A DNA stretch of 64,000 nt from the NCBI GenBank assembly GCA_946965045.2, contig OX337241.1:2108001-2172000 (forward strand). Reading direction: 5' to 3'. A program made the translations under genes and the position numbers. The stretch is from Epithemia pelagica. Lineage: Eukaryota; Protista; Bacillariophyta. Shown here in pieces: positions 2,066 to 64,000 of the stretch. The first letter of the stretch is position 1. Each line of letters opens with the position of its first letter. The notes beneath the pieces are model-generated. The model searched no databases and was not told where the DNA came from. It was given only the letters and a program-made list of their open reading frames with translations.

Positions 2066-2293
2066 ATGAACGGAACCAATGTACCAGAACGTAAAGACGA
2101 TCAACAATCAACCCACCCACTCTCTTCTTCACAACAATCCTTTGAAGACAACAAGACAAGCACGATGCCGACTACCTCTGATTCTGATTTCAACCGTCCG
2201 CTTTATGTGCCGCACATGGAAGACTCCTTCAGATTGGAAACCTTTGCTCACCTTCTTCTCCCCAAGCAAGACCATTTCACCACAATATATAAC
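2066..2293 (+). CDS. Probable 5' part of the transposon partner gene, cut off by the YR cassette (ATG at 2066 or 2165)
   Basis: Protein-like frame (MPTTSDSDFNRPLYVPHMEDSFRLETFAHLLLPKQDHFTTIYN) that runs into the palindrome; joining 2293 to 4906 gives an open frame. Confidence 0.45.
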
Positions 2294-2425
2294 GAGGGTA
2301 GGCTGCTTAGGGCACGAGTGCCGTTACAGCTGTTGGCGCACGAGTGCGTGCAGCTTCAGCTGCCGCACGAGTGCGCCAACAGCTGTAACGGCACGAGTGC
2401 CCTAAGCGTAGCCTAGCCTCAGTTA
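2290..2425. repeat. ~135-bp near-perfect palindrome with four same-strand GCACGAGTGC motifs
   Basis: gcttagggcac..gttacagctgttggcgcac pairs with gtgcgccaacagctgtaac..gtgccctaagc; centre gcagct-tc-agctgc; two tandem GA/AG mismatches in the stem. Confidence 0.95.
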
Positions 2426-2429
2426 AAAA

Positions 2430-2493
2430 TGTAATTATACAGTGTCGATACTTTATTCCAAAGTAGACCGAGTGCTATTATTCTAGTAGTCGC
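2430..2493 (+). repeat. Left subterminal inverted repeat of the YR element
   Basis: Reverse complement aligns to 4841-4902 at about 54/64 positions, first 22 identical. Confidence 0.9.
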
Positions 2494-2737
2494 TATTTGC
2501 TATCCCCAGTAGAAATCCTCTAATGTTCCTCTAGTATTCCTTGGCATCAAGTTTTTCTTGGCATCAAATTCTATGCGTGACGCGTGACACAATTCAAATT
2601 TCCACACTATGGTGTATAGTCCAACATTATTTTCTATAGTAGGGCTTGCGCTCACGCCAGCTTGGAATTTGCCTCCGGACCACATTTGCACCCTCATTCT
2701 TCTGCCAAAACAATCAAACAGCAGGGAAACACTCACC

Positions 2738-4709
2738 ATGGCACCCAAGAACCATTCCAGGCGCTCCAAGCGCATTTCAGAGCGACAGAATCCTTTGACT
2801 GATTCCACCAACAAAGTGGGGAAGCCCCTTGGTGCCAAAAAGGCATCCAAAGGGAGCAACAGGGCCAAAAAGGTGCCCAAGAAGGCCCCTCCTATGGCTG
2901 GGCCCCAAGGACAGCTCCCATCTGCTTCCTTGATGGTGCCAGTGCCCAAACAGGCACCCAAAGCACCTCCTATTGGTAAGTTCTTATATGGTTGATTGTT
3001 TTGTCAGTGCTGGATGCATGGTTTGCATTGGAACTAACCTTTCTTGGCTTTTTTGTGTTGCGCAGCCACTATGACTCTTCCCACAAGTGTCGCAACTGCT
3101 GCTGAAGCGTTGTCAACCACAACCACCACTGTGACTACCACTACTCATCTGGACCAAGAGTTCCAGATTGCCCGTGCAACTCATGGGGACATGCGGGGCT
3201 TTTTTATGGTGAACGAAGCTGCGGAACGCAATGCAGCTGCCCTAAGTGAAGCTTTCGACGTGGCAATGCATGCTGATGTGGGAGCATCCGAGGCCCAGAA
3301 CGCCATCTCTAACAGTGCTACTGGAAACTCTCGGGGTTACGTTCGTGCGCAAGGTTGTCGTGTTGAGGAGTTCTTGCAAGCTGGTCGGGACAACCCCTCT
3401 TTGGCGAAGTTTATGGAGATTGTGGACGACAACCTTAACAAATCTGTCGTTGCATCACCGACAGACCAACCTCTTTTTGTTAAGTTGATCAATAAGGGTG
3501 GAAACCCTTTTGATACTAAAGCAATTGGGTTTATGAACCGTCTCCTTCTGAACTGGTTCTGGCATGGACTGATCAAGAATGAAGAAAAGCCCCCTCAGCC
3601 TGGGACCATCGCTACCTATTACAGGTCTCTACTTTCAGCGATGAAACGACACTTTGGACTGCCCTACTACCCCTCCAACTTCAAGGGCTTCGATGGATCA
3701 TTTGAGTCCGTAACCAAAGAAGCCATGAATAATTGGGCTAGACGTGATCCTACCTATGGCACATGCCCTACACGCACGGAGTTTACGGACGAGCACTGTG
3801 AGATTGTCAAAAACTACATCAAATCGGATCGCTTCAACATTCACAACCCAGTGGACCTCCGTCAGCTTCTGTACTTTGTTCTTGGTTTCACTTGTGCTCT
3901 TCGTGCTCGGGAGGAGCACTATTCTCTTGAATTTAGCCACTTTCGGTTTGGTACTTATGAATCTGGACACGAATTGGCAGGTATGGAGTATGTTCAATGT
4001 GAACTCCCTTCGCTACTTAGCAAGGGGCACAATATTACTCTCGGTAAGTAATTTGTAATCCTCCAGCGTGATCACTACAGTTGTAACATTGTACTAACAT
4101 TTCTACACTCTTTATTCTCTATCTACAGGAAATGCCTATGCACGTTCTAGATTCCACAACGATGGCTACCGTTTCCCTGTGATTGATGGTGAGCTCTTTA
4201 ATCTGGGCTATATCATCAAGCTAGTGCGATCTAAAACTCCTCCCAACCAAAACTACCTCTACTGCCATGAATTGGGTCGACGAGAGAAAGCTGCTTGGGC
4301 TAGTATGGGGTTCCCAGATTTTGTCTTCTCTGAAACGAAGCGAATGGGGATTAATATGGTTGGGAAACTATTCCCTAGCTTGTTGGCGCGATGTGGACTA
4401 CCTAATACCCTACGCGGACAGCTACGACACTATGCATTGACTACGCTTGCCAACACTCCGGGGATGAATCCGTCTGAAATTGCCCGCACGGCACGCCATA
4501 AGTCCCTTACATCTCAAGCAGCTTACATCCGTGTGAATCGTACAAGTGAGGTGAATCGTGCTTCTGCTCTCACTGGGGTCTTGGCTACGAATGCTCCCAA
4601 GACTGGAGATGCCATCCCACAACCCAGTGGACACGGTCCTCAGCCGCCGGTGCGAAACCCCTACATTCGTCCTTCGCAGAGCGCTTCTGGTCCAGTCTAT
4701 CCTCTTTGA
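2738..4709 (+). CDS. Tyrosine recombinase, Crypton-like, 3 exons (2738-2975, 3066-4043, 4129-4709), ~598 aa
   Basis: GT-AG introns 2976-3065 and 4044-4128 with CTAAC branch sites join three ORFs in frame; catalytic R (LRAREEH, 3902), K (KGHN), GQLRH (R at 4425), RHKS (H at 4497), Y (AAYIR, 4524); basic N-terminus. Confidence 0.88.
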
Positions 4710-4840
4710 GAATTTCGACGTTAAGCGTGCCTAGATAGTAGATCTAGCCTTGACCATATTCTTCCAGTGCCATTACACGTGATCAAGACTAAAAATTACT
4801 AGAATAATGACACTGGACGATTTTTACTTAGAGACCAGTG

Positions 4841-4902
4841 GCGACTACTAGAATAATAGCACGAGTCTACTTAGAAGAAAGTATCGTCATAGTGTAATTA
4901 CA
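4841..4902 (-). repeat. Right subterminal inverted repeat of the YR element
   Basis: Partner of 2430-2493; TACTAGAATAAT also repeated at 4797-4808; contains GCACGAGT like the palindrome. Confidence 0.9.
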
Positions 4903-4905
4903 ACC

Positions 4906-6572
4906 GTGTCTCGCATCAAACGCAACGATGAAACAGGAGCACCTGCCCTTTCCTTGTTTTTCCCCTTATTTCCCAAGAAAAAACTCGAATGCCACCCCGA
5001 AATCCCCGATCATGACTTTACTCCCATCGAACACGGCCCCGGTTCTCAATGCATTGAACTCTACAAAGCATCTGTCTTTATCGACGGCAGCCACCCAATC
5101 ACCTACAAGACTGAAATCATGTACCCTGCTTTCGTCTTCAACATCCATGACTTGCAAGATCCCAAGAACTCCTGGGCCGAAGGAATGCGGAATGTATACG
5201 TTGTTCGATACAAGCAAAAGAAAATCGGCGGAGTGGTTCGTTTAGTTCCTATCAAGGATGAAGAAGTCCGTTGTTTCCCTACGGACTATGTAAAGCGAGA
5301 CCCCGAAGATCTAATCGTCTGTCCTCGATGCCTACATAAGAACATTTGGACTGGCCTGTTTCAGCTTCGGAAAGCAATCATGAAGATTATGAATCGTCGA
5401 AGTGGAGCTCTCGAAGAGCGTCACACCCAATCCATTTCAATCGGTGCCATTCCTTTGGAAGTATTCAACTACATCCACGTTCTGGCAAACTCTACAGCAC
5501 AGACTCTCACTTGTCACTCTATTTCTAATACAGAGGCTTATTTGGTATTGGACGAAAAATTGACCCGCCGTAAATTGAAATTCAAGTACGAAAGTGGGTT
5601 CCTCCGTTTCATTTCGTGTGACGACCTTCATCTTCTCCGTTCCTTTCTTGGTATTAGTGCCATCTATGGCTCAACCGAAGCCCGTCCAACTTTATCTGAC
5701 GGAGACCGTGGAATGTCTCTCAAACGCGGGCATACATTGACCGTTGTCCGAGGCCAGGAAGAAGCAGAGTCTCCTCAAGAATTCAAACGTCGCTCGAAAC
5801 AACAGCGAGTAGACTTCATGTTTTCTCCCAACCAGGTTCGTGTTACCGTTGCTTTTGAAAAGTACACCTATGATACCATTGGCACTAGCGACCAACTCAA
5901 ACGTGACGCCCCTACACGTCATCTACAGGCAATCCTTACTGGTTCGGATTCCGGAGAACACCCCGAGACAGTTTACTATGTTACAAGGGCTGGAGAAACT
6001 ATTGCGGATCCCAAGAATGGAAGCAGCGAATCGAATGCATCATCCAACCTTTCCGACGACAACACCACCCCGTGCAAGCTCCCCCCCCCGTGGCAATGAG
6101 TCCGAGCCCAGCGAACAAAACCAATTCAAGCCGTGACGAAGAATGGCTCAATGACAATACTGTCGAACCCCGAAGAGAAGACCGTCTGGAATTGGTTTCG
6201 CTAGACTCCCGGGCAAAAGCAACAGTGAAGGGTAAGAGCATTTACGTCGGTGATCAGTACATGAAAGACGAGTCTGTGATTGAGGTTGTCCAAATCATCA
6301 GTGGATACCCCAGTCTTCGTTTCTTGCTTCAACACCGCGTGTCGGGCGAATTGTATACCACCACATTGTGTCCCAGAGAACACCTCAGAGAGGAAGATAG
6401 GACTCATTATATCGACATGGAAATTTACCTCCCTCCAAACAGACTACCATTTTATGTTTGTCGTCCAATCGCAGGTCCTTTATACAAGGAAGGTGCTGAC
6501 GACGCTCACCAAATCACCATGGTTCGTCCCCATTCCGACCGTATCTTGGATGACATCGAGAAGTACAACTAA
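4906..6572 (+). CDS. Hypothetical transposon partner protein (~555 aa, no start codon of its own; 1-bp frameshift in C9 run 6081-6089)
   Basis: ORFs 4906..6099 and 6072..6572 join if one C is added to the run; the frame opens at the right edge of the YR cassette; stop lies 46 bp from the transposase stop. Confidence 0.7.
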
Positions 6573-6618
6573 TAAGTACTCGTACATAGTATCATTACAA
6601 TACGATCATCTTTCTAGA

Positions 6619-9600
6619 TTACTCATCATCACTATCATCAGAATCTTCGTCCATTTGTCGTAGAAGTTCCGCAGTCTGTTTGATATTGTTCTCCACTTGG
6701 TCGACAGTTTGGCCATACAGATCCTCTTTACCAAGATGCCAATCGAATACCAGGTCTGTTCGTTCTTCCCCCTCGCCTTGTGCAACGTCTGATACCATAT
6801 CAGAGATTAATTGGCCGAATACGATGGTCCCCCCCAAGTTCCGAACCCAATTCTTGTTGTATTCCTGTTCGGTCTCTGTCAAGTTCAGTAGGTAATCTCG
6901 CATGAACTGTTCCGTATACTCCCCAAGAAACAGAGTCCGTCGTTGGATCCATCTTGCCATAGGTAATAAGCGTGTCTGTTGTCCTTTCCCCTTGTTCACT
7001 GCCCCTCCCCTTTGCGTCCTACTGAAGTAGAAGGACTTGAAAAGACTGTTGAAAGCTGTATTGTTTTGAGAAACCGGTTCGTAAAGATCACAAAGCTCTC
7101 ACATAAACTTACCCTCCCATCCTTGTTGCGAATGTCTTGCCAGGTTCTTCCAATGAAGTAAATACTCGGCAATATGACCCGCTCCAAGCATATGCCCATA
7201 ATTGGTCACTCCTTCCGAGTTATGTAGCTCGACCCACTCCTTAAAAAAAAGATCCACGTGTTTTTGGAACTCCCACACCTGTGTTTCCGTGAAATCTTCC
7301 TTGGATCTGAGACGCCTGATCGCCTCCGAGTAGTGACTCACACTGCGGACCCACTTTTCTTGGAGTTCGCCATCCACGATAGAGACCACTACAAGCTTGA
7401 CGATGCATTGAAGCATGTCCCGAACTTGGCCATTATCGAGAACCACCTTCCCCACCTGTAGCTTCTCCTTATCATATGGGAACAACCACTGCTGTGCGTT
7501 TTTTCCGTTCCGAGAATCTCCCGATTTGCCAAATCTTGGACCTTGTCTCTGTAGGCCTCAGCAGCCGTCTTGTCCGAATACTTATCGTGAGTCGTCATCC
7601 ATGGTAGGATACCTTGTTTGGAGTTTGTCATTCCAATCTTAAACAACATCGATAGGATTTTAATCCCCATTCGTATCTCGAGATGCAAGATACAAGGGAC
7701 CATGTCCATCATGACGACCAATGCTGACTTGGCATTGTTTTTCCCAAACTTCTTCAGAGCGTCGGACGATTCGCGATAAACCCACTCTGACGTCAATTGA
7801 ACCTTCAACCTTTCTTGGCGCTCAATCATCAATCCATCTAAAGGCAGTCCCCGTAATTTTAGGTCATTTGTCAGATGCTGGGTGTACGTTGAACGGCTCT
7901 TGCGAGTGGCCTTCGAAACATCGAAATGAATCGACGTAATCTCTTTTCTTTGCATCGGAGTGGATTGGAGTCTCGGGTCGAGATGTGGCGTTATCTTGGA
8001 TTTGGACCAGATGGTCTCCAATTGTTTCGTATGTTTAGGTAGTCCAGCTTCGAACGATTTCACTTCTCGTTGCAACGCGGCGCGATGCTCCTTGGTCAGC
8101 ATTTTATGATGCCGACACTCCCAGTTAGGATCATCGTCCAAGTGACCCATTTTCTCACACCACTCGCACTTTGAAGGTTTGTCAGTGGCACGTAGATGGA
8201 GGTCTTTGCTATGAATGGGGCATTTCGTGCACGGGTAGTTGGCATTCTTGGCAGCCCCCCCCACAACCACAAAGCTTCCACTCGCAGGACATGTCACAGT
8301 TTGTGACGATCCATAACGCGAGGATGCCAAGTAATCGTGGGAGGATGGTGTTCGCTGCCTCAGCGATTTCAGCAAACAAGACGGAAAAGATTCCTCGGAC
8401 GTTTGCCTTGGTTTCACTGCCCATTACGCAGACCAAAGGTGTGACGTCGTTCCGAGATGACGTCAGCGGGTTGGATTTGTCGTTGAATTTAATCCCCGCA
8501 AGAGTATGATTTGTGTAGTTGGTCAATGTGGCACCATCTAGTGTCTGTGCCATCATCAGATTCCTCAGCATGCCTTCTGCAACTGCCTTTCTTGCAAGAA
8601 TCACTTCCCGAACCATGTCTGCTACTCGGAAATAGAACCCCTCTGTTCCGTCTTTGGAGTTTCGGATCATTCGAAAGGGGATCTTTTCGGCGCCGAATCT
8701 CTCCATCATTGCTGCAATCTTCTTGACAGAGCCAGAACTCGGGATAAGCGTCCGCTTATGTCTCTCTCCATTGTTCTCGCATCGTCGAAGGATCTCGAGT
8801 CCCTCGTAGTTGAGGACTCCTCCCGCGAGATCCATTTCCTTCAATATTCGGAAAGGAGAATACACATACCGACGCATGTGGAGTCGGTACGTATCCATCA
8901 TCTTGTCTCTCAACTGAAGCCCATGAATATCGTCGTATAGCATCATTTCCACAAGCAGTTTGAAGAACAGTTCTGTTCTGTGGCTGTCAGTGGCATGATT
9001 TTGCACGCTTCTAAGAATCACCATCTTTATGTGCGCTACAATCTGTGCCGACTTGACGTAATCGGTGCACGATCTTGGTACATTGCAGAAAGCTTGTTGT
9101 AAAGCTTCCATTGATTTCAATTTCTCACTCATTTTTCTCATTTTGTCGTCATTTTTCTTGAGTTGAATCTGTTGAGCTTTTTTTTGTCGAAGTAATTCGC
9201 GGCGTTCTTCTTTCAGTAAGTCAATCCTTGCTTGAAGAAGTGAGATCTGGTTTTGTGGCGAAAGCGGGGGATCTATAGATGTTGCACTGTCGCAATTTGG
9301 ACTTTGGAGAGAGAGTGGGCTCCTTTCTCGAAGAGTACCAGGTGGGGAAGCGATGTGCTGAGTGTCAGTGTTCGGAGATTGTGTGTCTCTGGATGGAGAA
9401 AGTTGTTGTGTATTGGAAACGGTAGTGGTATTGACTGGTGAGGGTACAGGATTACTTCGTCGTTGGGATGGTGGAGATCTTGGTGGATGTGACTGGGAGT
9501 TGTCAACGACGATAGTCCTGTCGTCTCCAGTGTTAGACGACGGGTAGTCAGATGGTTCTCGTGACGATGACGAAGAGACGATCGTTGCCCTATCTGTTGT

Positions 9601-10338
9601 GGAGAGGTCTTGTTGTGAGGTTTGGAAAGACTCGTTGTCACTTGAGTCATCGAAAACGGCATCATAATCTTGTGGAGAATCATGATGTTTTGATTCATCT
9701 GTTGCATCGACAGTTTCTTGAGTAGGAAAGCAGTAGAGTGCGAGTGTCGGTAATGGAGTGGGGGAAATGTCAGATGGAGATGAGAGTAAATTATTGGGCT
9801 TCGATTGCTTCACAGTCTGCTTCTTGCGATATACTTTGGGTGGTGGTGGTCTTTTGGTTGTGGGAAATCCGACGCCTTTGTGTTTGGCCCGGCATGTATA
9901 ACGTCCGTTTTCCGCCTTTCGGTTCAATTTGTGTTGGGGTCTGGTTGTCTCCATCTCGTCGGCATCGAAACAGTTTCTGCAAAACTTGAAGCCCTTGAAT
10001 ATTTCTTCTCGATGTCGGCCGAAAATAGAGCAAGGTTGAAAATCATGATCTTCAAAATCTTCGATCAGGTCGGCGATGCGTTTCCTTTCTTGGTAGCTAA
10101 TTTGTAACGGCAGACTTGCCCCATTTCCTTTCCTTTTCGATCGCGTTTGAAGGTTAGGAGAAGGAGGCAAGGCTTTGATTTTCTGTGCTTGTAGACGAGT
10201 TACACCTTGCGATGCTGATGGGGGGAGAGGTGCAGAAGGAGTGGCACGGATACCTGCCTCATTATCGTTGGATGTCAGTGTTCTGGATCGCTTGGGAGAC
10301 CGTCTTCTGTTTGAAGACTTGCGACGACGCTTTGGCAT
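6619..10338 (-). CDS. RAG1/Transib-family DDE transposase, ~1220 aa after repair (intron 7056-7112; 1-bp shifts in C8 run 8255-8262 and T6 run 7499-7504)
   Basis: QTLDGA (D, 8536-8538), NCDMS (D, 8293-8295), CGGAAKNANYPCTKC, PCILHLEIR, VTNYGHMLGAGHIAEY..SQQGWE (E, 7114-7116) then AFNSLFK after splicing; order and spacing follow the RAG1 core (DG..YDE..CTLC..LH..ITNYFHKTLAH..SEGNE). Confidence 0.85.
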
Positions 10339-10349
10339 GGTTGGGATTA

Positions 10350-10391
10350 CGTTCCGAGTGTTGATGTGAACGTTCCGAGTGTTGATGTGAA
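10350..10391. repeat. 21-bp tandem duplication just upstream of the transposase ATG
   Basis: cgttccgagtgttgatgtgaa at 10350-10370 and 10371-10391. Confidence 0.9.
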
Positions 10392-10546
10392 GTACAATGG
10401 CAAGTCTACTTCGTTTCCATTGTCAACGGAAAAAGGGAACCTGATAATGTGAGACAAGAATTTCCATCAGTCGGTCATAAAAATGCGAGTCAACAACGAT
10501 AAAAAAGCGACTTGGCTGTTATGTTCATGTTCATGTCCGTATATTT

Positions 10547-10607
10547 CTTTTGGTTGAGTCACGACGGTTAAATGAAATTTTGGTTGAGTCCCGATGGTTG
10601 GCATGAA
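10547..10607. repeat. ~30-bp imperfect tandem repeat x2 in the subterminal region
   Basis: ttttggttgagtc(a/c)cga(c/t)ggtt..atgaa at 10547 and 10577. Confidence 0.8.
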
Positions 10608-10918
10608 TTTTTGGGGGCCTATTTTCGGTCGGCAAATTCGTTGTTATGGACATGAGATGGCTGTTATATGCCATTGGAATAAGGTTCTCCATATATTAAA
10701 ATGTCTAAATCCAACGGATCATAACAGTGGTCTATGTTCCGTTGCGATGGAAATCGTCGTTGAATGAGGCGTTGTGGCTTTGGCATGAAATTTTCTCTAA
10801 GATTCGCCTTATATTTAACAAAAAACGCTACTACTCTTTTTCGTATAGTGAAATAAGAGGAATTCGGTGTGTGACATCGGGGCGAGTACGGCATGTCGGA
10901 ATCCACGCCGGGTCAGCT

Positions 10919-10943
10919 TTGGTAGGGAAGTGCTGCTATTGAA
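10919..10943 (-). repeat. Right TIR (reverse complement TTCAATAGCAGCACTTCCCTACCAA)
   Basis: 20/25 match to 1801-1825; the two terminal bases differ from CA. Confidence 0.55.
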
Positions 10944-11045
10944 CAATTAATTCCCAGCCGCTGAAACCGCGGTTTGCCATTGGTTGTTCTTTTGTTTTTT
11001 CGTTGTCTGTTGCTGTCGCTATAATAGGTTATGGGGGTGACTATA

Positions 11046-11886
11046 CTAGAGTTGGGGTGGGGTGGTCATGTGAGGAGTACGCGACATGGGGGTTATATGG
11101 GTGGGGGAATATCGTGTGGCCGGACAGACGGTGAAAACAGAAGATTTTTGGAGGCGGCAGAGTTTGCGTTGTTGGGCGAGATGAGTGTCGGTTGTGGAAA
11201 GGGCGTCGAGTACGTGTTGGGCCAACGCGGTAGTGATAGCATGGCCGAGGGTGAGCTTGGCATGGTGGGCAAGGGTCATCTGACGCGAAGAAGGGCCGGG
11301 AGGGGTGTGGGTCTGTGCTGTGTGGATGAGGTTGGAAGGAGCAAAGCGAAGATTTTGAAAAGCCAAAAAACCATCGGGGTGGGGAAGGCAGCGGTCAGAG
11401 CGTCCGAGTTGGGGGGTGGTCCAGGTGGGAGGGTGGGAGGGAGAGAGAGAATAGAAAGGTGGCTGTCCAAAGAAGAGGGTGTGGGCGAAGTTACCCAATC
11501 CTCCCAGGTGGTCGATGGAAAAAGGCAGAAGGAGGAGGTCGTTTGAGTTGATGAGGGCGGTGGTGGTGGTGTCAGTTTTGTCTTGTGGTGCTTTGGACAA
11601 GAAAAAAAATGGTCGCCATACGGATCGAGGCGGGGATGGGAGGGGCAGAAACAATTGGAGGGGAAGTGGGAAGGAAGGAAAGGGATGCGGAGTTTCCGAC
11701 TGATGGCGATTTCAAACAGGGGATTGGAAATGCGAAAGTGGTTGAGGAAACGAGGTTGATGCAGTGGAGCGCCAGTGAGTGGAGACAGGGCAGAGGGGAG
11801 GGAACGACGGAGTTGGGGTGGAGTAGATGCAACAATCAAAGGGAGAAGATGAGTCTCCTGGTTATCGAGGGCGAGCTGGTGCTGGG
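11046..11886 (-). pseudogene. 3' part of the CRE-like ORF (CCHC-like knuckle and end of endonuclease region, internal deletion near 11575)
   Basis: CFCPSHPRLDPYGDHFFSCPKHHKTKL followed by a frame change to INSNDLLLLPFSIDHLGGLG; the intervening PD..D endonuclease core is not visible. Confidence 0.7.
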
Positions 11887-12669
11887 TGTTAGAATTCTCA
11901 CCGTCTATGGTGGTAAGATTCTACATCTCATCGATTCCCCATGTCACATAGCCTCGTGCTATCGCATCATGCCATCTAGCTTCGAGCTATGTTCCCTAGC
12001 TTCGCGCTATATCGACCTATATTTCTTCGCAAATCATGAAAAGTGAGAATAGATTGACGAACTCACTCTCAAGACTAAACTGGGTCGTGCGGTATTACAA
12101 CGGACATAAATTTGGCCGTTGCTCGGACATTATACTAACACCCTAAGCGTACGCGCCCGAAATCATCGAGCGCGCCCAAGCGACATCCGAGCGCTGTCGG
12201 CATCTATCCGACCCAACGGTCTAAGTATCCCAAGCACGACACACGATCACGCGAGACCATATTTCCATTCCCACAATCTCCAAATTGTCAACAAGTTGCG
12301 CGCCATGAAAACAACTATGCCAACCCAAAGCAAGAGCTGTTGACCCTGTATATGTTATCCGTCCACATATACATGTCATATACATCACATGAATTGACTC
12401 CAACTATTCCAAACCTGTTGCCGCCAAGAACCTATGATACATGACCCTTGGCAGGACCGAACATTTCACGTAGACCTATCGTAGTAATCAACACACAATC
12501 TAACAATATCACCATTTATCACATCTTCTTTTGTGTCCCGACTATCCTTCTGATAGACTTCGACTTGCTTGCTTCTCTGACCCTGAGAAGCTTGTATCGG
12601 TTGGTGACCTACCTGATTGTCTGCTCTACCGAGCATCAATGTCCCTACGATTCAGAAAGAATTGTAACA
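11887..12669 (+). repeat. 5' LTR, family A copy 1 (783 bp)
   Basis: TGTTAGAATTC..GAATTGTAACA; only a handful of differences from the 3' LTR. Confidence 0.97.
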
Positions 12670-12683
12670 GATTAACAGTCTCA
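12670..12683 (+). promoter_or_regulatory. Putative primer-binding site GATTAACAGTCTCA (complement of a tRNA-Asn GTT anticodon arm)
   Basis: Abuts the 5' LTR; identical 14-mer at 51956-51969 and, inverted, at 39696-39709. Confidence 0.7.
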
Positions 12684-12705
12684 AAGCTTATTTCCTTGTG
12701 GTTTC

Positions 12706-13485
12706 ATGGATACTAACAAGCTTATCACTCCTGTACGACAGATCTATCGAGCCAACCTGCATCCGGGGCAGCCCAATACCCTGGTGTAGCAGGAACTGGT
12801 GCCGACGCCGAAGGCAGCCAACACATCGGTCAACATCTCCGTCGACAGTTCCAACAGCAACCCATTCGAGACTCCAACCCAGCCTCACGCTCCGATCCCT
12901 GCGCCGTTGCTTCGGCCCCCGAGTCCGCCTCGTCGGCTTGTCCCTTCTCGATCCCGTCGTACCACCCGGTTGATTGCTGATCATATCAAGTACTTCCGCC
13001 AACCAACTTGTTCGACCTTCGATCCCGAGATCATCCGTGGGGAGACCCAGATCGAACGCCAGTTCCAATCGGTGACCCACATCGTCGACCAAGAAGACAT
13101 TGACCGTCTGAACGACCAACTTCACCGTTCTCCGAGGCGTCGCCTCATCTTGGCCGCCCTCTCGGGCAACCCCATCCGTACTGTCCACCTCCGCTTCCTA
13201 ACCTTCGAGCGCCCAACTGGATACTACAATACCATCCACGTCGTGAACGCGACGACTTGCCCTCTGCCTCCTAACGTTGTACGCCTAGATAACTACGTTG
13301 CCTACATCCACGAGGTCCATACCATCGAGGACCATCGTGCAACTATCTACCCTTTGCGTACCGAGGTCGAGAACCACCTGGCTGAAGGTGATACCCCTTC
13401 TTCTGTTGCTTGTGCTGCCCCATCTGAGCCTGGAAACGACTCTGATTATTCGGAAGAGAGTGGGGATTCGGAGACCGAAGCTTAA
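12706..13485 (+). pseudogene. Accessory ORF upstream of gag, with TAG at codon 28 (12787-12789)
   Basis: The intact 259-aa copy at 51992-52771 has CAG at this position. Confidence 0.85.
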
Positions 13486-13521
13486 TTACTCATAGTTAAC
13501 TCCCGTCCTCTCAAAACCTTT

Positions 13522-13810
13522 CCAAGACTTAAACTCAACGCACATCCGGGTACCCGTGGTCGCACAACACGCCACACATTCCCGTCAAATCGCGAAAATT
13601 CGGCGAAAATTTGTTGAAACTCGGCGAAAATTTGTCGGAATCAACGGAAATTTCCAGGAGTCGCACATCACAACACACATCCGGGTATCACATACGTGGT
13701 ACATACGTGGCACACGTGGTACATCCGGGTTCACATCACATCACACATTAAATAAACCACATCACACCGCACATTAAATAAACATCGAACCAACCAAATA
13801 ACACCATGGA
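13522..13810 (+). promoter_or_regulatory. 289-bp repeat-rich spacer before gag (putative internal promoter, IRES or packaging element)
   Basis: Repeats ACATCCGGG x3, CGGCGAAAATTT x2, ACGTGG x3, CACATTAAATAAAC x2; near-identical in families A and B. Function is inferred. Confidence 0.55.
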
Positions 13811-16800
13811 TCCTCAATCACCCAAGACACCTACGACTCCTAAAGAAGAAGATAACCAAGACAATGTCTCAAACACAGACCTATTCGACCACATCATATT
13901 TACTGTCTGCCAATTCTTTACCAAAGAAAGGGCCGACTACTTAATGAAGTGGATGAAATACCATGGTTTTGAGAACATTACCCATGTTATCTCGTATATG
14001 CAAACTAATACCGAGGAATCCATGAAGGAACTGACACAATATAAGGTCAACAAACAGACACATGATCTACAAGGCCCCACAAGACAGCAGATCAAGCTCT
14101 TGGCTTATTGGGCCATATACAAGACCAATGAAATTCAAGACGAGCTATCCAATAGCGACTGGATGAACCTAACGAGGAAAGAGTTCAACACTTGGAGGAT
14201 CAACACAGATTTCTCTAAGGGACCACCTAGCCAAGTCCCAGTCTCGCCAATGAAGTCACCGTCATCTGTGAAATCTGTCAGCACAGTTACTGCCGCATCC
14301 CAATCTGAACAAGACCTTACAGCATTCAGAAAGGGAACTAAGCGCGACGCAACTGCATATGAGGTATTCAAGGATGAACGATACTACGATTCATTCTGGC
14401 GTGTATTCAGGACTACAGCTAAGGCTCAAGGCCTATCCAACGTTCTGACTTTCAAATACACACCACCCCATGATGATGAGTATGCCGAGGAACTTTTTCA
14501 AGAGCAACAAGTATTTCTTTACTCCGTTCTTGTCCGTATCATTCAGACTGACCAAGGTCGAGCCTATGTACGTGAACATGAACATGATGAAGATGCGCGT
14601 GCTGTATTGCAGAAGTTACACTCTTTGCATACCGAATCCGACCTAGCAAAGCGAGAAGTCCTCCGTTTAACCAACTACATTTCCAATCTACGTCTTGACG
14701 ACACATGGCGCGGAACAACACGTCAATTTCTTCTACACTTTCAAGAGCAGCTACGTTTGCTAGACAATCTAGTGACATTGTCTGATCGCATCCCTGATCA
14801 TACCAGGATGACCTTCCTCATGCAAGCTGTAGAAAAGGTACCTGATCTCCGCCGAGTCAAGATCTTGGATAATGTGGTGAACACCAAATCCGGTGCAAAA
14901 TCCCTTTGCTATCAATCATACTTCCGTCTCCTTCTAGACGCAGCTTATGACCATGATCAAGCAACCCAGTCATCTGTTCATAGTCGCCGTCGACATGTCA
15001 AACAACATGAATCACTATATGGCCAAGATACAGATGCTGACATAACCTCACAAGATGATATGGAGTATCATGTCCACAACACCAAAGCGACATCTGAATC
15101 TCCATCCTCTCCGTCCAAGGTTAGTCTACCGCGTGACCTATGGTTCAAACTTTCTGAAGAAGATCGCAAGTTGATCATTGAGTATAACAAGATGATTCAA
15201 GCACCTTCATCAACAACACCGAGGAAAGTGCAAACACATGCCCTCGACATTGATCCGGAACCTGATCCTGACCCCAACCAAGTTGCATCTGATGACGACT
15301 CACCTGGCGTAGCCCCTGAGCATCCAGATGATTCAGATCCGGTTACACAATTTATCAACCAAGCCATGACGACTGATATCAATCACCCGGCAACTGACCT
15401 GACTAGTGTTCTTTCTAACGCCAAGTCCAAGACGAGCAAGAAGGTTACTTTCAAAGCCAACATGCATAAACAAGCAGGACATGTTCCACGCTATTTGTTT
15501 TCCAGGAAATCTACTTTACCAGGAAATCAATTGATTGACCGTGGTGCTAATGGAGGACTTGCTGGTTCTGACATGCGCATCCTTTCTAAGACTGGCCGCC
15601 ATATCACTATTGTGGGTATTGATAACCATGAACTTACTGGACTTCCTGTCGTCACATGTGCCGCAAAGTTTGAGACCAATGATGGACCTATTGTCGGCAT
15701 CTTCAATGAATATGCTTATTATGGAAAGGGCTTATCTATCCATGCTCCTGGTCAATTCGAGCATTTCGGACTTGCTGTTGATGAACGATCTGTTAAAGTT
15801 GATGGTAAACAACGCATCACTACACTTGATGGTCGTGCTATACCCCTTCACATCAAGGATGGGTTAGCCTACATCCACTCCTTGGGTATCCCCAGCGACG
15901 ATGACATGGATACCTTACCTCAGATCATCTTCACGTCACCCGACACATGGGATCCTGGTGTTCTGGACCATTCGTATTCTCCCACACCCTCTGACAATGA
16001 TTCTGATTGGAAACACGTCAAGACTGATGGTAGTATGTCGAACCATCCATATGACAACTATGGGGAGTACACTGATCGTGTTGTTTGTAACCTCAATCTC
16101 CTTTTGGATCTCCCATACGATCATGGACCTGACGACGCACCCTTCTTTTCTATCTATGCTGACGCAGAAGGTAATGATCCTACACTTCATGCCTCTGTCC
16201 ACCGTCGTTACCAGGAAGCGTATGACTGGAAGAAGTTCCGTCCATTCTTTGGTTGGCAATCTGAAGATGTTATTGCCGATACGTTCAAGCACACTACACG
16301 TAATGGTAGCATTACTTTTGACCACGACACCCTCAAGAAACATTTCAAGGCTTGCAATCCGATCCTTAATATACCTCGACGCCATGAACCCGTTGCTACT
16401 GACTCGGTTTTCTCCGACACCCCTGCTGTTGACCATGGCGGTAAAGTTGCACAAATCTTTGTTGGTCGAGATACTCTGGTTACTGATATCTATGGGATCA
16501 AGTCAACCAAACAGTTTGTCAATACTCTTCAGGACAACATCCGGTTTCGCGGTGCCATGGAGACTCTTATCAGTGATGGTGGTTCATCTCTCATCTCTCA
16601 AAAGGTCAAAGACATTCTTCGCACTTTGCTTATTGGGGAGTATCGATCCGAACCTTATCATCAACACCAGAATAAGGCTGAAAACCGTTACCAGACCGTT
16701 AAACGTATGACCAACGCTCTCATGAATGCCACTGGTTGCCCTGCCAACACCTGGCTTCTTTGCCTTGAGTATGTCTGTGACTTATTGAACCATACATCAT

Positions 16801-19800
16801 CACCCACCCATTCCGGTCGCACTCCTCTTGAGGCTCTCTCCGGACGCCCACCCGACATTACTCATCTCTTGTTCTTTCCTTTCTGGGATGAGGTTTACTA
16901 CCGTGTCGACCCCGCTGAACCCAATTCCGGTTCATATCCATCTTCTTCTGATGAGAAACTTGGCCACTGGGTTGGTTTTGCTCACAACGTTGGTGATTCT
17001 TTTACTTGGAAGATTCTCACCCAGGATAACCAGATAATCTACCGTTCTGCCGTTCGCCGTGTTGCATCCACTACACCTAACCTACGTGTGGATCGACCTT
17101 CAGGGGAGGATTCGTCTGAGAAGGATGACAATGATAAGCAAGCTGACACTGTCTTCATTCGCAGTGATAGTGAAGATCCATCCAAACCAATGCCCACGAT
17201 CGATTTTGACGACATGATAGGACGCACATTCCTATGCGACACAGAAGAAAATGGGGAGCGACACCGTGCACGTGTCATCAAACGAGTCATTGATCTTAAT
17301 GAAGAAGCAACGAAACAGGAAGAACGTGTCAAGTACATCTACCGAAAGACAAATTCTGATGTTGATGAGATGATATCCTATAATCAACTCATGGAGTATA
17401 TCGAACAAGATAACCAAGCTCAAACCTCTGGAGATAATCTTTTCAGGTTCAGGGACGTCATTGCCCATCAAGGCCCACTGAACACAACTGATCCAGATTA
17501 CAAGGGGAGCAAATATAATTTGCTTGTTGATTGGGAAACTGGGGAGACTACCTATGAACCTTTATCACTCATCGCCAATGATGATCCGATCACTGTAGCA
17601 ATTTATGGAAAGAAACATGGTTTACTCAACGAACCTGGATGGAAGCATTTGAAACGTTATGTCAAAACAAGCAAACGTCTCATTCGAGCAGCCAAACAGT
17701 CAAGGATTAAACAAGTTCACCATTCCGTCAAGTATAAGTTTGGATTCCAAGTACCGCGCAATTATGAGGAAGCTGTCGCTCTTGATAAACAACATGGCAA
17801 CACAAGGTGGCAGGATGCAACAGAATTAGAATTGTCACAGATCCAGTCCTACAAGACATTCAAGGATTTTGGGAAAGCCATCTTCATTAAAGGGAAAGTA
17901 TCCAATGCACCTGAAGGATATCATAAGATACGTGTACATCTTGTCTTTGACGTAAAACATGATGGACGACATAAAGCAAGACTTGTCGCAGATGGACATT
18001 TCACAAAAGAACCTGTTGAGACAATCTATTTAGGTGTTGTTTCCATTCGCAACCTCCGCATTGCCTTATTCCTGGGTACTTTGAATGACTTGGAAATATG
18101 GGGAGCAGATATTGGAAACGCATATCTGGAAGCCTTGACAGGGGAGAAAATTTTCATTGTCGCAGGACCTGAATTCAAGGAATTAGAAGGTCACATCCTG
18201 ATTATATACAAGGCACTTTATGGATTGAAGTCATCAGGCGCACGCTGGCATGATGTCTTATTCGATGTTTTGACAGACATGGGATTTTCACCAAGCAAAG
18301 CAGATCCGGATATCTGGATGAGGAAAGCACCTGGAGAAGACTGTTACGAATACATTGCCGTATACGTTGATGACTTAGCCATTATTTCTACTGATCCTGG
18401 GAATATCTGCAAGATCCTGAAGGAGAAATACAACTTCAAACTCAAAGGAGATGGACCTATTGATTTCCACTTGGGATGTTGTTACACCAAGGATTCTGAT
18501 GGAACATTAGTAGCAGATCCAAGACGCTACATTGGTAAGATGATGGACACTTTCGAACGAATCTTCAAGGAGAAACCCAAGAAAGCCAAAACACCTCTTA
18601 TTGGTGGAGACCATCCTGAATTGGATGATTCTGAGCTCCTTGATGAAGAAGGTACTAGCCATTTCCAAACTCTGATTGGACAACTCCAATGGGTGATCAC
18701 TATTGGTCGTTTCGATGTCTTCACCGCTACAATGACGCTATCACGCTTTCGTGCTGCTCCGAGGAAAGGACATCTTGATAGAGCCAAGCGTATCTATGGA
18801 TACCTTGCACATCTCCCAGAAGGCGCAATCAGATTTAGGATTGGAGAGCCTGATTATTCAAGTCTTCCTACCCAAGAATTTGATTGGACTCGCACTGTCT
18901 ATTCGAATGCAAGTGAACGTATTCCTGAAGACTGCCCAACACCTCTTGGCCGCTATGTTACCACAACTCATTATGTTGATGCCAATCTCATGCATGACAT
19001 AGTCACTGGTAAATCCGTCACTGCTGTTCTACATTTGTTGAACGGAACACCTATTGACTGGTACAGCAAGAGACAGAGCACGGTGGAAACTGCTACCTAT
19101 GGATCCGAGTTTGTGGCTGCAAGGACAGCAATAGATCAGATTACAGAATTACGACATTCTCTCCGCTACCTTGGAGTACCTATCCGAGAGCGAAGTTACA
19201 TGTACGGAGATAACAGATCTGTTGTGCTCAATGCAACCGTTCCTCATTCCATACTATCCAAGAGACACCATCTTCTGTCATACCACCGAGTTCGTGAAGC
19301 CATCGCAGCAAAGTATGTTGCATTCTACCGTTGGTCCTCGGAGGGGATGTAGGATCCCAGCACGTGCCTAGTTACAATAGCCCAAAATATTACTGTAGCT
19401 CGTTTTTATAGTTAGCGTATATAAGTAATATTAGATGAAAATTAAGCGGGCCAAAATGTGAGCGCACGAACGAGACACAACAGAGAGAGCAAAGTAACAC
19501 GACAACAATCCAACAGCACAAGAGGTAAAAACAACACAACAATGGAACCAACAGCACAACAAAGCAAGCACAGGGACAATCAGTGCAAGGCAAGGCAACA
19601 CAACAACCAACCACAATGAGCACAGGGACAACCAAAGCAACACAACAACCAACCACCGCGAGCACAGGGACAACCAAAGCGACACAACAACCAACCAAAG
19701 CAAGCACCGGGACAACCAAAGCAACACAACACCAAACACAGCAATCAAAGAGACAGGAAACAGGGCAGGGCAACCACATCAACAAAGGCAAGGCAACCAA

Positions 19801-19911
19801 CAAGCAACATAGGAAGACAACAAGCAACAACACAATCAGCCAACCGAAGACACAGAGAAACACAACAACCAACCAAAGTCACAGTCAAAGGTCCAACAGT
19901 TCAAGAACAAC

Positions 19912-19951
<40 letters not shown>

Positions 19952-21095
19952 AACAACCAAGCAGTGGAACAGGAAGAACATGAACCATCCACAGATACCA
20001 CAAGAGCCAACAAACCCCAACCAGCCGAAGCAAGGACACAGCATCAGACCATTCACCAGAAACAAAACAAAGAACAAGACATGGTTAGAGATGCCATGGA
20101 TTAAGATGCAGCAATCAAACAAAAACAGGAGGTGGAACATACCTATTGGAAGCAGGAAGATTTTGTTGGAAGAAAAAAGGGAGATTCTGCTCGTCCATGT
20201 GCTGTAACAAAGTAGAAAGCACATCTGTTAGTAACAAGAGCATTAAGAATGGTAAGAGAAGGATCAGACTGCACTTACTTTGATTGCTGGATGCCTGCCA
20301 TGGATGTTTGTGTCCATGGTCATCCACCGAATGCAAATTTTGATCGAACGAGGAAAAATGAGACGAGAGATGGAATGAGAAACCTGCCACAGTGACAGTG
20401 TGGCCCGTAATCCGCACGTAGAAGCAGTACAAAGAAAATGCGACCGGAGAATGCTGGCGCGCACAAATTCAGACGTGCGTGACACATGACCCGGTCACAA
20501 GTCATAAGCAATGATTGACGGTCGGTTGGGGTAGACACGATCAATCTAATTAGCAACCATCTTCTTAAGTAGCTCTGCCTAAGTGATTAGGAAAGTGCCT
20601 AAGTATCAGAATCTTACATCTAAGTAGGTCTATTATATCGGATTGTTGTCGGCATGTGGAATGTCTAAGAACTAAGATTACTTAGTCCCCTCCTCGGACG
20701 CAACGGAAGCGCACGACATCTGCTCCTCGTTGTGAGTCTCGTCGGGGGCACTTCTCGGGGCCTAGCTCCTCGGCGGGCAATAGGTCCTCGTCGTGTACTG
20801 CCCCAAATCCACTTAACGTGGATTTGATAGGGCAGTACACTCCTCGGACCTATTGCCCTTCTCGGAGTTAGGCACCCTCGTCGTGCCTCCCTCCTCGTCT
20901 CACTCCTCGGAGCAGATGTAGAACTACTACTGGAAAGATGGAAAGACCAACCCTGCCGATATCCTTAGCAAACATTGGGATTTCGTATCTATTTGGCCCA
21001 TGCTCAAGCCATTGTTGTTTTGGAAAGGAGAAGTTCAAGACCTCAACAAATCCAATGATGACAAGGCTGAAACGACGAGTTGTGGGGAGTGTTAG
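13806..21095 (+). CDS. Copia gag-pol polyprotein interrupted at 19328 by a 1.6-kb insertion
   Basis: PR (IDRGANGG), IN (DSVFSD..SDGG..AENRY), RT (YVDDL), RH (YVDANL..GSEF..GDN); frame resumes at 20931 (WKDGKTNPAD) and ends in the LTR. Confidence 0.95.
19568..19745 (+). repeat. 42-bp minisatellite (3 units plus 1 degenerate)
   Basis: gcac(a/c)gggacaaccaaagc(a/g)acacaac.. at 19620, 19662 and 19704; degenerate unit at 19568. Confidence 0.9.
19915..19948. repeat. (AG)n microsatellite
   Basis: About 17 AG units. Confidence 0.97.
20716..20919. repeat. 204-nt imperfect hairpin with periodic pyrimidine internal loops
   Basis: Stems acatctgctcc/ggagcagatgt, gtgag/ctcac, gcctagctcc/ggagttaggc, gggcaataggtcc/ggacctattgccc, gtgtactgccc/gggcagtacac, caaatccac/gtggatttg; terminal loop ttaac. 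Confidence 0.95.
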
Positions 21096-21872
21096 AATTC
21101 TCACCGTCTATGGTGGTTAGATTCTACATCTCATCGATTCCCCATGTCACATAGCCTCGTGCTATCGCATCATGCCATCTAGCTTCGAGCTATGTTCCCT
21201 AGCTTCGCGCTATATCGACCCATTTTTCTTCGCAAATCATGAAAAGTGAGAATAGATTGACAAACTCACTCTCAAGACTAAACTGGGTCGTGCGGTATTA
21301 CAACGGACATAAATTTGGCCGTTGCTCGGACATTATACTAACACCCTAAGCGTACGCGCCCGAAATCATCGAGCGCGCCCAAGCGACATCCGAGCGCTGT
21401 CGGCATCTATCCGACCCAACGGTCTAAGTATCCCAAGCACGACACACGATCACGCGAGACCATATTTCCATTCCCACAATCTCCAAATTGTCAACAAGTT
21501 GCGCGCCATGAAAACAACTATGCCAACCCAAAGCAAGAGCTGTTGACCCTGTATATGTTATCCGTCCACATATACATGTCATATACATCACATGAATTGA
21601 CTCCAACTATTCCAAACCTGTTGCCGCCAAGAACCTATGATACATGACCCTTGGCAGGACCGAACATTTCACGTAGACCTATCGTAGTAATCAACATACA
21701 ATCTAACAATATCACCATTTATCACATCTTCTTTTGTGTCCCGACTATCCTTCTGATAGACTTCGACTTGCTTGCTTCTCTGACCCTGAGAAGCTTGTAT
21801 CGGTTGGTGACCTACCTGATTGTCTGCTCTACCGAGCATCAATGTCCCTACGATTCAGAAAGAATTGTAACA
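21090..21872 (+). repeat. 3' LTR, family A copy 1
   Basis: 783 bp, preceded by GGGGAG and followed by TSD CTGGG. Confidence 0.97.
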
Positions 21873-27800: not shown

Positions 27801-27974
27801 TGACGCGAAGTACTTGCGCTGTGAGGTTAGGTGACTGGGACCGGCTGTGGGGGTTGGGGAGTCGGTAAGGTGTGATGCTGGTGGTCGGGAGAAGGTGGGT
27901 CGTGCCGTGCGGGGGCCATGGGGCGGAAAAGCCGTTTCGTGGAACGGCGGTTTCCGCGGCCGGTGCACCATCAT
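21873..27974 (-). CDS. CRE-like retrotransposon ORF, main part (~2030 codons): Pro/Thr/His-rich N-terminus, Zn fingers, RT
   Basis: CPYPSC..HLQQAH and CRLC..HLQAHVNKSH fingers; LRPIGIG, QYGI, LLDLTNMFN, GFSQGCPLSP, VMDD, FLGHPIG RT motifs. True start uncertain. Confidence 0.88.
27050..27595. repeat. 273-bp tandem duplication (91 codons) in the 5' part of the CRE-like ORF
   Basis: Copies at 27050-27322 and 27323-27595 with few substitutions; frame preserved. Confidence 0.92.
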
Positions 27975-59556: not shown

Positions 59557-60037
59557 GTCTTTCTCTCATGGTCTTGGATAAAACAAACCTTTGCTTATCA
59601 AGATCTCTTGTTCAATTTTGTACCTATTCATCATCATTCATATCCAAGCTCCGTGCTACTTTTCATTTTCAGGTTTGACAAAGCGCTATCGTGTTGATCC
59701 TCTCTCCCTATTTTTCTGTAGCTATAACAAAACACTAATTGCTTGATTTCTCTATCACTGCATCATAACTGCCGCTTTAATGAGTGTGAATCTTGAGTTG
59801 TAAGAGAATACTATATGCTCCTAGTCCTAGTGTTTTTGTTCTATTAGATTTTCATGATGGTTTTCATTGTGCACAAAGATCTGTTTACTATCGGCATCCA
59901 ACTTTCATCCTACAGCATCCTAGTAGAAGGGTGCATCACACGTGCAGCTACTCGTAGTTCGAGTTTGGAGGTCACGATGAAAAGAATCAAAGCCATGTGT
60001 TTTCTGGATTGTTTCCAAAACATACCACTGGTGCCAA

Positions 60038-63340: not shown

Positions 63341-64000
63341 GATCCGTAGGTTTTGTGGTGCACCTTTTTTTGTGGTCGTTCTTCTCCTTCCTCTGTTCTC
63401 CCCGACAGCCCCAGAATCTCAACAATCTGCGGCACGAAACAGCAATCGACAAGAACCTTGCACCACGAGGACAGACACAGAAAGAAGATCCTCTTCCCTT
63501 GTTGACGTCCTGGTCAAGCTTGGATGTTGGAAGTTGGAATTGTGACAGACCAGAAGAATCTGGGGGTCGGGGGGTCATTTGGAACGACACGCCCCCTTTT
63601 TAGGTGGGGGTTCTTTTCCATGACGTCATAAAAAAAACGACCTTGAAGCGACCACTGATTCCCACCATATTAATATTATGGTTTTCGTGGGAACAGCGCA
63701 GAAAAAGAAGGAATCTGGATGTCCTTCTGTCGGACCGAATTCTGCCAACACACGAAACGAACGAACGTCGTCGTCGCCGCCGCCGCCATGTTTTGGGGTT
63801 CCAGAAATCACATTACGCAACAACAACAAACTCACAGAGCAACAACAGAACTGCAACCTGCAACATCTTCTTCTTCTTTGGCGTTTCCCCCACCAAACCA
63901 AACTATCCAACCAACCAACCCTCTCGATTACCACAATGACAGTATCGATTCGCACCTTTGTGTTCTTGTTATGGGTCTGGCGTTGCGTCACCACCAGCCA

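Follow-up and report, generated by a model that had tools for sequence, protein, structure and literature searches.

Crypton DNA transposons are said to go back to Goodwin et al. in 2003. Among the classes of eukaryotic DNA transposons they are, to our knowledge, the one understood least, with undefined cis-requirements and ends that have been called featureless. As defined by Kojima and Jurka in 2011, Cryptons encode a tyrosine recombinase (YR) as their only enzyme and lack both terminal inverted repeats (TIRs) and long direct repeats (PMC3212892). They are bounded by direct repeats of 4-6 bp that match the target and are regarded as the substrate of recombination, and a circular intermediate has been proposed (PMC3212892). 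They have been reported in oomycetes and in one diatom, Phaeodactylum tricornutum (CryptonS); the CryptonS termini are repeats of 5 or 6 bp, mostly TATGG (PMC3212892). In this study, two insertions were analysed in a 64,000-nucleotide stretch of the diatom Epithemia pelagica (contig 17, 2,108,001-2,172,000; hereafter the window), and the genome searched for their relatives comprised 60.5 Mb in 23 contigs. The insertions are referred to as the ACAA and the CTAC element, after the 4-bp words at their termini.

Both inserts, which were mobile recently, are most probably Crypton-type DNA transposons of a diatom lineage, which is the best explanation of the observations as a whole. They are new relative to the described Cryptons in having a conserved structured site, 4-bp ACAA or CTAC termini and many non-autonomous derivatives. 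The words hairpin and palindrome are absent from the earlier description (PMC3212892), and no Crypton ends of this kind were found in the literature searched. A first-pass annotation of the window had proposed a new class of hairpin-ended YR transposons. This was partly supported: the annotation was right on the mechanism and overstated the elements as a new class. Both families fit the structural definition of Cryptons (YR only, no long terminal repeats, 4-bp repeats of the target) and diatom Cryptons are already known (PMC3212892), so a new class is not supported; the assignment is made by structure, not by phylogeny.

Two insertions with constant 4-bp termini

The span 2290-20926 comprises two separate insertions with unrelated DNA between them, and their limits were corrected to 2282-4903 for the ACAA element and 19325-20930 for the CTAC element (window positions on the + strand, here and below, unless another strand or contig is given). 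Comparison with empty sites, provided by nine Copia copies and a paralogue on contig 7, refined the junction duplication, previously put at 3-4 bp, to exactly 4 bp for both elements. Each family uses one constant word, ACAA or CTAC: an empty target has a single copy of it, an occupied one two. Long terminal repeats (LTRs) were found in neither family. Autonomous and non-autonomous members, as had been suggested, are present in both; the non-autonomous ones consist of the ends only, and measure 374-986 bp in the ACAA family and 385 bp or 1.6 kb in the CTAC family. The DNA of the window contains spliceosomal introns and Copia and gypsy elements, and the nearest named relatives of the proteins studied are from the diatoms Epithemia clementina, Entomoneis paludosa and Cylindrotheca fusiformis.

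The autonomous ACAA element is 2622 bp long including both ACAA words, which corresponds to a net insertion of 2618 bp. It consists, in order, of ACAA (2282-2285; the crossover or duplicated target, placed by junction alignment and the empty site), 4 nt, a 136-nt foldback (2290-2425), a 64-bp repeat (inverted repeat IR-L, 2430-2493), a three-exon YR gene, the same 64-bp repeat inverted (IR-R, 4841-4902) and ACAA (4900-4903; junction alignment). IR-L pairs with the right terminal repeat, as judged from copy comparison and joined-end folding, and is itself internal, not terminal. The empty site was found on contig 7 (252554-253141), in a 98-99% identical paralogue of the host open reading frame (ORF; window 2066-6099 with the element removed). 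The flank matches to this paralogue overlap by exactly the 4 bp ACAA, and removal of the 2618 bp restored the host reading frame. The existence of such a close paralogue means that the interrupted ORF is itself part of a repeated unit.

The same two ends were found by DNA search in at least eight further genome copies, all of them internal-deletion derivatives of 374-986 bp, three of which were 99% identical to the window copy and the others 79-88%. ACAA starts and ends all nine copies in the junction alignment, with unrelated flanks. The YR gene in the window is intact, with 598 codons and a stop, and is apparently present as a single copy in the genome.

The CTAC element (1606 bp including both CTAC words, net 1602 bp) is a non-coding, non-autonomous insertion of 1.6 kb in the 3' end of a Copia pol gene. 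Its CTAC words, at 19325-19328 and 20927-20930, were placed by junction alignment and the empty site. Nine other Copia copies have the uninterrupted site with a single CTAC, and the flanking sequence compared was identical, which indicates a very recent insertion. Three other full-length copies were about 74% identical overall, with conserved ends, and identical termini were observed in four copies of the 1.6-kb element and six of a 385-bp derivative. The latter resembles a miniature inverted-repeat transposable element (MITE), has the same plan, and its copies are about 98% identical. A single CTAC terminus pattern retrieved 29 genome copies, compared with none for the reversed-pattern control.

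A YR-coding element with the ends of the 1.6-kb insert, which the first-pass annotation had proposed to look for, exists. The last 251 bp of the CTAC element, containing the foldback, are 92% identical to the ends of YR-coding elements of about 5 kb, and its first 103 bp are 81-83% identical to their opposite ends. The two loci L031 and L032, which are 99.2% identical over 4,994 bp, are of this type, together with their relatives. The long conserved ORFs of the ~5-kb elements are YR exons only, on the strand that reads away from the foldback, and share the motifs of the window recombinase (R-x-x-R or H-x-x-R, then R-H-K/S and Y).

Several features of the hosts of CTAC-type elements were also recorded. 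The pol 3' end (window 18900-19324) of the interrupted Copia element (13806-19352) is present in at least 40 genome copies at 100% identity, indicating a very recent burst, and the CTAC insertion is younger still. On contig 9, at about 2.94-3.06 Mb (L034, L035 and L026), a segment of about 42 kb occurs in three tandem copies, each with a CTAC-type YR element and a Copia element; over most of a 9.9-kb stretch, L034 and L035 have 99.5% identity, and an insertion of about 2.1 kb interrupts the foldback in the third copy. On contig 1, at about 436-500 kb (L039 and L040), a 385-bp CTAC-type mini-element lies within a gypsy-like retroelement. This retroelement is present in at least two copies that are 97% identical, so that the mini-element has been copied along with its host.

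Foldbacks and oriented boxes

The foldback of the ACAA element (2290-2425) folds at -72.5 kcal/mol (z -15.8), a value reached by none of 200 shuffled sequences, and that of the CTAC element (20716-20919) at -66.4 kcal/mol (z -9.3). These were the top two folds of the 64-kb window when it was scanned in sliding segments of 200 nt: they scored -77 and -57, the third-ranking fold scored -44 and the median was -19.8. The foldbacks are 136-204 nt long, begin 4-7 nt from the crossover word and occupy one terminus only, in agreement with the earlier annotation.

Both foldbacks are palindromes in which a short box holds one orientation on both arms, and these same-strand boxes interrupt the stems, as had also been noted. 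Four copies of the box GCACGAGTGC, spaced by 26-27 bp, lie on the + strand of the ACAA element (2312, 2338, 2365 and 2391), and in that orientation the box is found nowhere else in the window. The box of the CTAC element, (C)CTCG(G/T), occurs 11 times with a spacing of 12-18 bp within each arm, and forms loops that read alike on both arms (CGAG on the - strand). The + strand of 20690-20910 contains 11 CTCG and no CGAG, where the frequency in the window as a whole would predict about 0.75. In both families the boxes read CGAG in the direction from the foldback end to the gene. In a folded strand, CGAG lies opposite CGAG, which gives tandem G.A mismatches. The CGAG strand is the sense strand of the gene, and it folded better than its complement by 2.6-12.5 kcal/mol in nine of nine foldbacks.

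A copy of the box motif near the opposite end, another feature of the first-pass annotation, was recovered in both elements. The right inverted repeat of the ACAA element contains a CGAG box at 4862, and a 17-nt motif with a CTCG box at the left end of the CTAC element (19336-19352) is a direct repeat of 20905-20921, in which two central positions differ. In the two 64-bp repeats of the ACAA element the CGAG core (2469 and 4862) has the same orientation though the flanking bases are inverted, as within the foldback.

Upstream of the gene for the E. clementina protein P0065, a foldback (z -12.3) was found with the same four invariant boxes and different stems. Comparison of the window foldback with it showed compensatory changes at 10 of 52 pairs, with invariant boxes; the E. 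clementina copy also has the inner and the terminal inverted repeat and ACA-type ends. Among ten CTAC-type foldbacks (three from another assembly), compensatory changes affected 21 of 53 pairs. Judging from these alignments, the foldbacks are maintained by evolution, in that the structure is conserved and the sequence is not. The hairpins of the ACAA and CTAC families do not align with each other and the recombinases are only about 22% identical, so that the earlier placement of the inserts in different families stands.

The motif CTAAGTA(G) occurs nine times in the window, versus 2.5 expected, and six of the nine are inside the two elements. Such motifs lie on the - strand within IR-R, and a cluster of CTAAGTA-like motifs is at 20564-20630, just inside the CTAC foldback. 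The earlier observation of these motifs was partly confirmed, and they are conserved among copies within each family. As a hallmark common to both families, CTAAGTA was rejected: one family has it at the foldback end and the other at the end away from the foldback, and the 385-bp derivative lacks it.

The tyrosine recombinase

The YR gene of the ACAA element was searched exon by exon. Exon 1 (2738-2975) encodes a basic N-terminal region, exon 2 (3066-4043) the N-terminal domain, and exon 3 (4129-4709) ends in the stop codon (4707-4709); the exon 1 limits were set by GT/AG splice sites and reading phase. The gene reads away from the foldback end. The Pfam matches of exon 2 to DUF3504 (E 0.0097) and of exon 3 to Phage_integrase (E 0.016) are collinear. 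Motif searches placed the first catalytic Arg in ALRAREEH (3896-3919) and a Lys candidate at 4022-4042, both in exon 2. The second Arg (4410-4454) and the His with the predicted Tyr nucleophile (4491-4532) are in exon 3. Arg I, Arg II, His III and Tyr are all present and nearly invariant; the family alignment (A4) shows hardly any variation at the second Arg, the Arg-His pair or the Tyr. The canonical HxxR is kept in other family members.

The closest relative of the window recombinase is P0065, a hypothetical protein of E. clementina (E 2e-40 and 4e-43 for two exons; phmmer gave 2e-40 for exon 2). The recombinases of the ACAA and CTAC families were 22% identical over 177 residues (E 6e-5). 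A profile search retrieved 188 relatives at E 0.001 or better, all of which were unannotated. Phage_integrase was matched by 23 of 119 aligned members, with a best E of 2e-6, and no protein of this YR family reached the Pfam gathering score. Word-index protein searches with exon 2 of the window gene and a reading frame of locus L036 returned ORFs of the same species only, and single-sequence PDB searches with the catalytic exons gave no match. The best PDB sequence match of the profile was the Tn1549 integrase, at an E of only 0.58, with the HxxR...H...Y motifs aligned. The nearest named Atlas clusters were Phage_integrase, DUF3504 and QRICH1.

For structural comparison, the AlphaFold model of P0148, an unspliced canonical relative of 888 residues, was used. 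Its top match was the XerA recombinase (Z 5.6 over 132 residues, a weak match), and the same list contained Cre, XerH, the integron integrase IntI and the Crypton-derived QRICH1 (Z 4.9). Foldseek gave no significant match to this model; XerA ranked 9th, with the highest probability (0.77). The structural support is weak but consistent, and the YR assignment draws on many weak but concordant lines of evidence.

Pfam detected no DDE, HUH or reverse transcriptase (RT) domain in the full-length relatives scanned, and nothing beyond the YR gene; RT was absent from both families. The first-pass annotation had named these enzymes as those that would speak against it, and its view of both inserts as mobile elements of one kind, driven by related Crypton-like YRs, was upheld. 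A relative of 1027 residues was found in an Entomoneis transcriptome, which indicates that the YR family is expressed in at least one diatom. Long low-complexity tails rich in Pro, His, Tyr and Asn, often with an H-Y end, were seen at the C-termini of several recombinases (L031 4809-5861 on the - strand, P0025, P0044 and P0148). These tails occur across diatom genera, and their sequences are not alignable.

Association of the foldback with YR genes

The association was examined at seven loci fetched by protein look-up alone, with another diatom genome and metagenomes included. A strong foldback lay 0.4-1.3 kb upstream of the YR gene in six of the seven, with 4-8 CGAG and 0-2 CTCG on the gene strand, and in five of these six it was the strongest fold of the 5-22-kb locus. 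In the E. pelagica genome, a family terminus was present upstream of all seven YR genes with at least 78% identity. Six of these termini were at 1.3-1.4 kb; the seventh is 3.6 kb away because its foldback has been split by an insertion. A similar foldback lies upstream, at 1.3-1.6 kb, of three YR genes with 63-65% identity.

The foldback of the 385-bp derivative shares only 78% identity with the foldback of the autonomous elements but still folds at -68 kcal/mol. The retention of foldback and pairing at this level of identity by derivatives that lack the gene points to selection on a cis function in transposition, and not in gene expression.

Locus L063 (ENA ERZ21939226, ctg1290l) has at 11441-11630 a second foldback with CGAG boxes, the terminus of which is GTAG; it lies 3.7 kb downstream of a YR gene. 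The adjoining ORFs match no family member, and this may be a non-autonomous copy.

Joined ends and a possible mechanism

Contig 1 has two ACAA copies arranged head to tail with one ACAA in common (tail-ACAA-head), which is the junction expected of a circle. When the ends of the ACAA element were joined, one continuous palindrome of about 285 nt was obtained, running from 4841 to 2493. Cross-junction pair counts proved noisy, and joined ends were assessed by fold energy against shuffles. The joined ACAA ends gave -128 kcal/mol, versus -93 +/- 2 when the other end was shuffled and -92 with genomic flank, and those of the E. clementina copy gave -103 versus -80 kcal/mol with a shuffle. Since the palindrome is completed by joining, the motif copy at the far end would be the outer part of the same site. 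In the CTAC family, the 17-nt box-bearing motif is directly repeated on both sides of the crossover. The first-pass annotation had allowed for a hairpin-capped or a circular intermediate. The tandem junction and the palindrome completed by joining favour the circular one, and the hairpin-capped form found no support.

In the mechanism that we propose, the recombinase would excise the element as a circle by recombination of its two 4-bp repeats, and the circle would be inserted at a matching 4-bp target. Within the circle, the foldback and the sequences of the other end would adjoin around the crossover, in the ACAA family as the single palindrome of about 285 nt. This palindrome with its oriented boxes might serve as a cis-acting recombination site, either by loading several recombinase molecules or by extruding as a hairpin or cruciform that marks one strand. 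A more specific version, for which we would argue only tentatively since we consider it improbable, is that of a eukaryotic YR transposon lineage with a structured-DNA recombination site, in which the palindrome and the strand-marking G.A boxes are read as a hairpin or cruciform, possibly as one folded strand.

Several observations weigh against the Crypton-type interpretation and the circle that goes with it. The Pfam matches of the window protein are below the curated cut-offs, and the position of the second catalytic His is occupied by Gly in the window protein and by Arg in the CTAC family. The P0148 model has a mean predicted local distance difference test (pLDDT) of 52, is poor at residues 430-540, and all its structural matches have Z below 8. 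Joining of the ends in the CTAC family gave only a marginal energy gain (z about -1.4 to -2.1). At the seventh locus of the association test (L065; ENA ERZ28668863, NODE_13313), which encodes the HxxR-type relative P0069, no foldback was found within 3.1 kb upstream of the YR relative. The circle junction, the excision footprint and transposition itself are deduced indirectly. The L065 locus may represent a subfamily without the structure, or a domesticated copy.

Alternative explanations

The recombinase might act on the CGAG strand folded as a hairpin, in the manner of integron attC sites and of XerCD on the CTX phage, with the tandem G.A boxes marking the reactive strand. Conservation of the structure without the sequence, the strictly strand-specific mismatched boxes, the better folding of the CGAG strand (by 2.6-12.5 kcal/mol, nine of nine foldbacks) and the position of the crossover word 4-7 nt from the stem base would all suit this explanation. 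However, the elements encode nothing that would supply single-stranded DNA, such as Rep or a conjugation function, the energy gap between the strands is partly due to the purine-rich boxes, and an array of double-strand binding sites with cruciform extrusion would fit the same features; we regard action on a folded strand as rather unlikely. A regulatory role, in which the foldback is a promoter or insulator of the YR gene or a source of small RNA and not a recombination site, is less likely again. It would explain why the foldback is always 5' of the YR gene and why CTAAGTA clusters lie between foldback and gene in the CTAC family, but not why gene-less derivatives of 374-385 bp retain the foldback with compensatory changes, why it abuts the crossover word, or why joining of the ends turns the ACAA foldback and the terminal repeats into one continuous structure.

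A long palindrome adjoins one end of each element and protelomerases have the YR fold, which might indicate a new class in its own right, transposing by way of a hairpin-capped linear intermediate that is resolved as by a protelomerase. This is very improbable given that the foldback is at one end only, that the crossover is outside the dyad and the palindrome intact in every copy, that a head-to-tail junction with one shared ACAA exists, and that joining of the ends completes the palindrome; moreover, the elements fit the structural definition of Cryptons (PMC3212892). The least probable explanation of those considered is that the short elements are moved by an unrelated DDE, HUH or RT enzyme encoded elsewhere, with the YR genes as passengers. 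Subterminal hairpins are typical of HUH elements (Helitrons, Replitrons and IS200/IS605; PMC10288648), and the ACAA family does have 64-bp inverted repeats; but the left repeat is internal and not terminal, Pfam shows only YR in the full-length relatives scanned, and the whole architecture travels with the YR gene across genomes.

Other features of the window

An ORF of 2039 codons is present on the - strand at 21855-27974, in a region with a high G+C content (0.55-0.59) and an extreme GC skew of about +0.5 on the + strand. Many of the window's next-strongest local folds are at 60000-64000, which is also rich in G+C (0.53-0.55).

Significance and comparison with known systems

The mechanism is testable in this system, as the ends are exact, the empty sites are verified, a conserved structured site lies at the crossover, and near-identical mini-elements of 374-385 bp are available. 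One intact recombinase gene of 598 codons appears to be the sole autonomous copy of the ACAA family in the genome. An assay with donor, helper and target is straightforward to design, and the covariation suggests stem-breaking, stem-restoring and box-flipping mutants. If the more specific version given above is true, it would be the first case of this kind outside prokaryotes and the first defined cis-element of any Crypton; if the foldback is read as a structure, the principle of integrons and the CTX phage would extend to eukaryotes. The oriented-box foldback could also be used as an annotation signature for diatom Cryptons and their non-autonomous relatives, whose proteins are now labelled hypothetical.

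The families share with Cryptons the YR as sole enzyme, the absence of LTRs, the 4-bp terminal direct repeats equal to the target, the diatom host and a weak sequence kinship to DUF3504, a Crypton-derived domain. They differ in that a conserved foldback of 136-204 nt with oriented boxes abuts the crossover, whereas Cryptons have been described without structured ends, in their abundant MITE-like non-autonomous derivatives, and in that none of their proteins attains the Pfam gathering score. The termini, ACAA and CTAC, are not the 5-6-bp repeats (TATGG) of CryptonS. Cryptons are also defined as lacking TIRs, whereas the ACAA family has a 64-bp inverted repeat, the left copy of which is internal.

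The integron attC/IntI and CTX phage attP/XerCD systems likewise combine a YR enzyme with an imperfect palindrome, conserved in structure and not in sequence, that has strand-specific mismatches; the corresponding observations here are the compensatory pairs (10 of 52 and 21 of 53), the one-strand boxes and the better folding of the CGAG strand in nine of nine foldbacks. Those systems are prokaryotic, however, their single-stranded DNA comes from conjugation or phage replication, and the crossover here is just outside the stem. Helitrons, Replitrons and IS200/IS605 elements resemble the present families in the hairpin near one end, the lack of classical TIRs and the short fixed target words, but they use Rep/HUH enzymes and far shorter hairpins, where the elements described here have only a YR and foldbacks of 136-204 nt. 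The hairpin-telomere resolvases TelK, TelN and ResT have a YR-type catalytic fold that acts at a palindrome; they cleave it at the dyad, and the resulting ends are closed hairpins, whereas the copies described here are ordinary integrated insertions in which no junction falls on the dyad. DIRS and Ngaro elements also encode a YR, and their inverted or split repeats are continuous in the circular form, but DIRS, Ngaro and PAT elements have RT and RNase H, and neither enzyme is present in the families described here.

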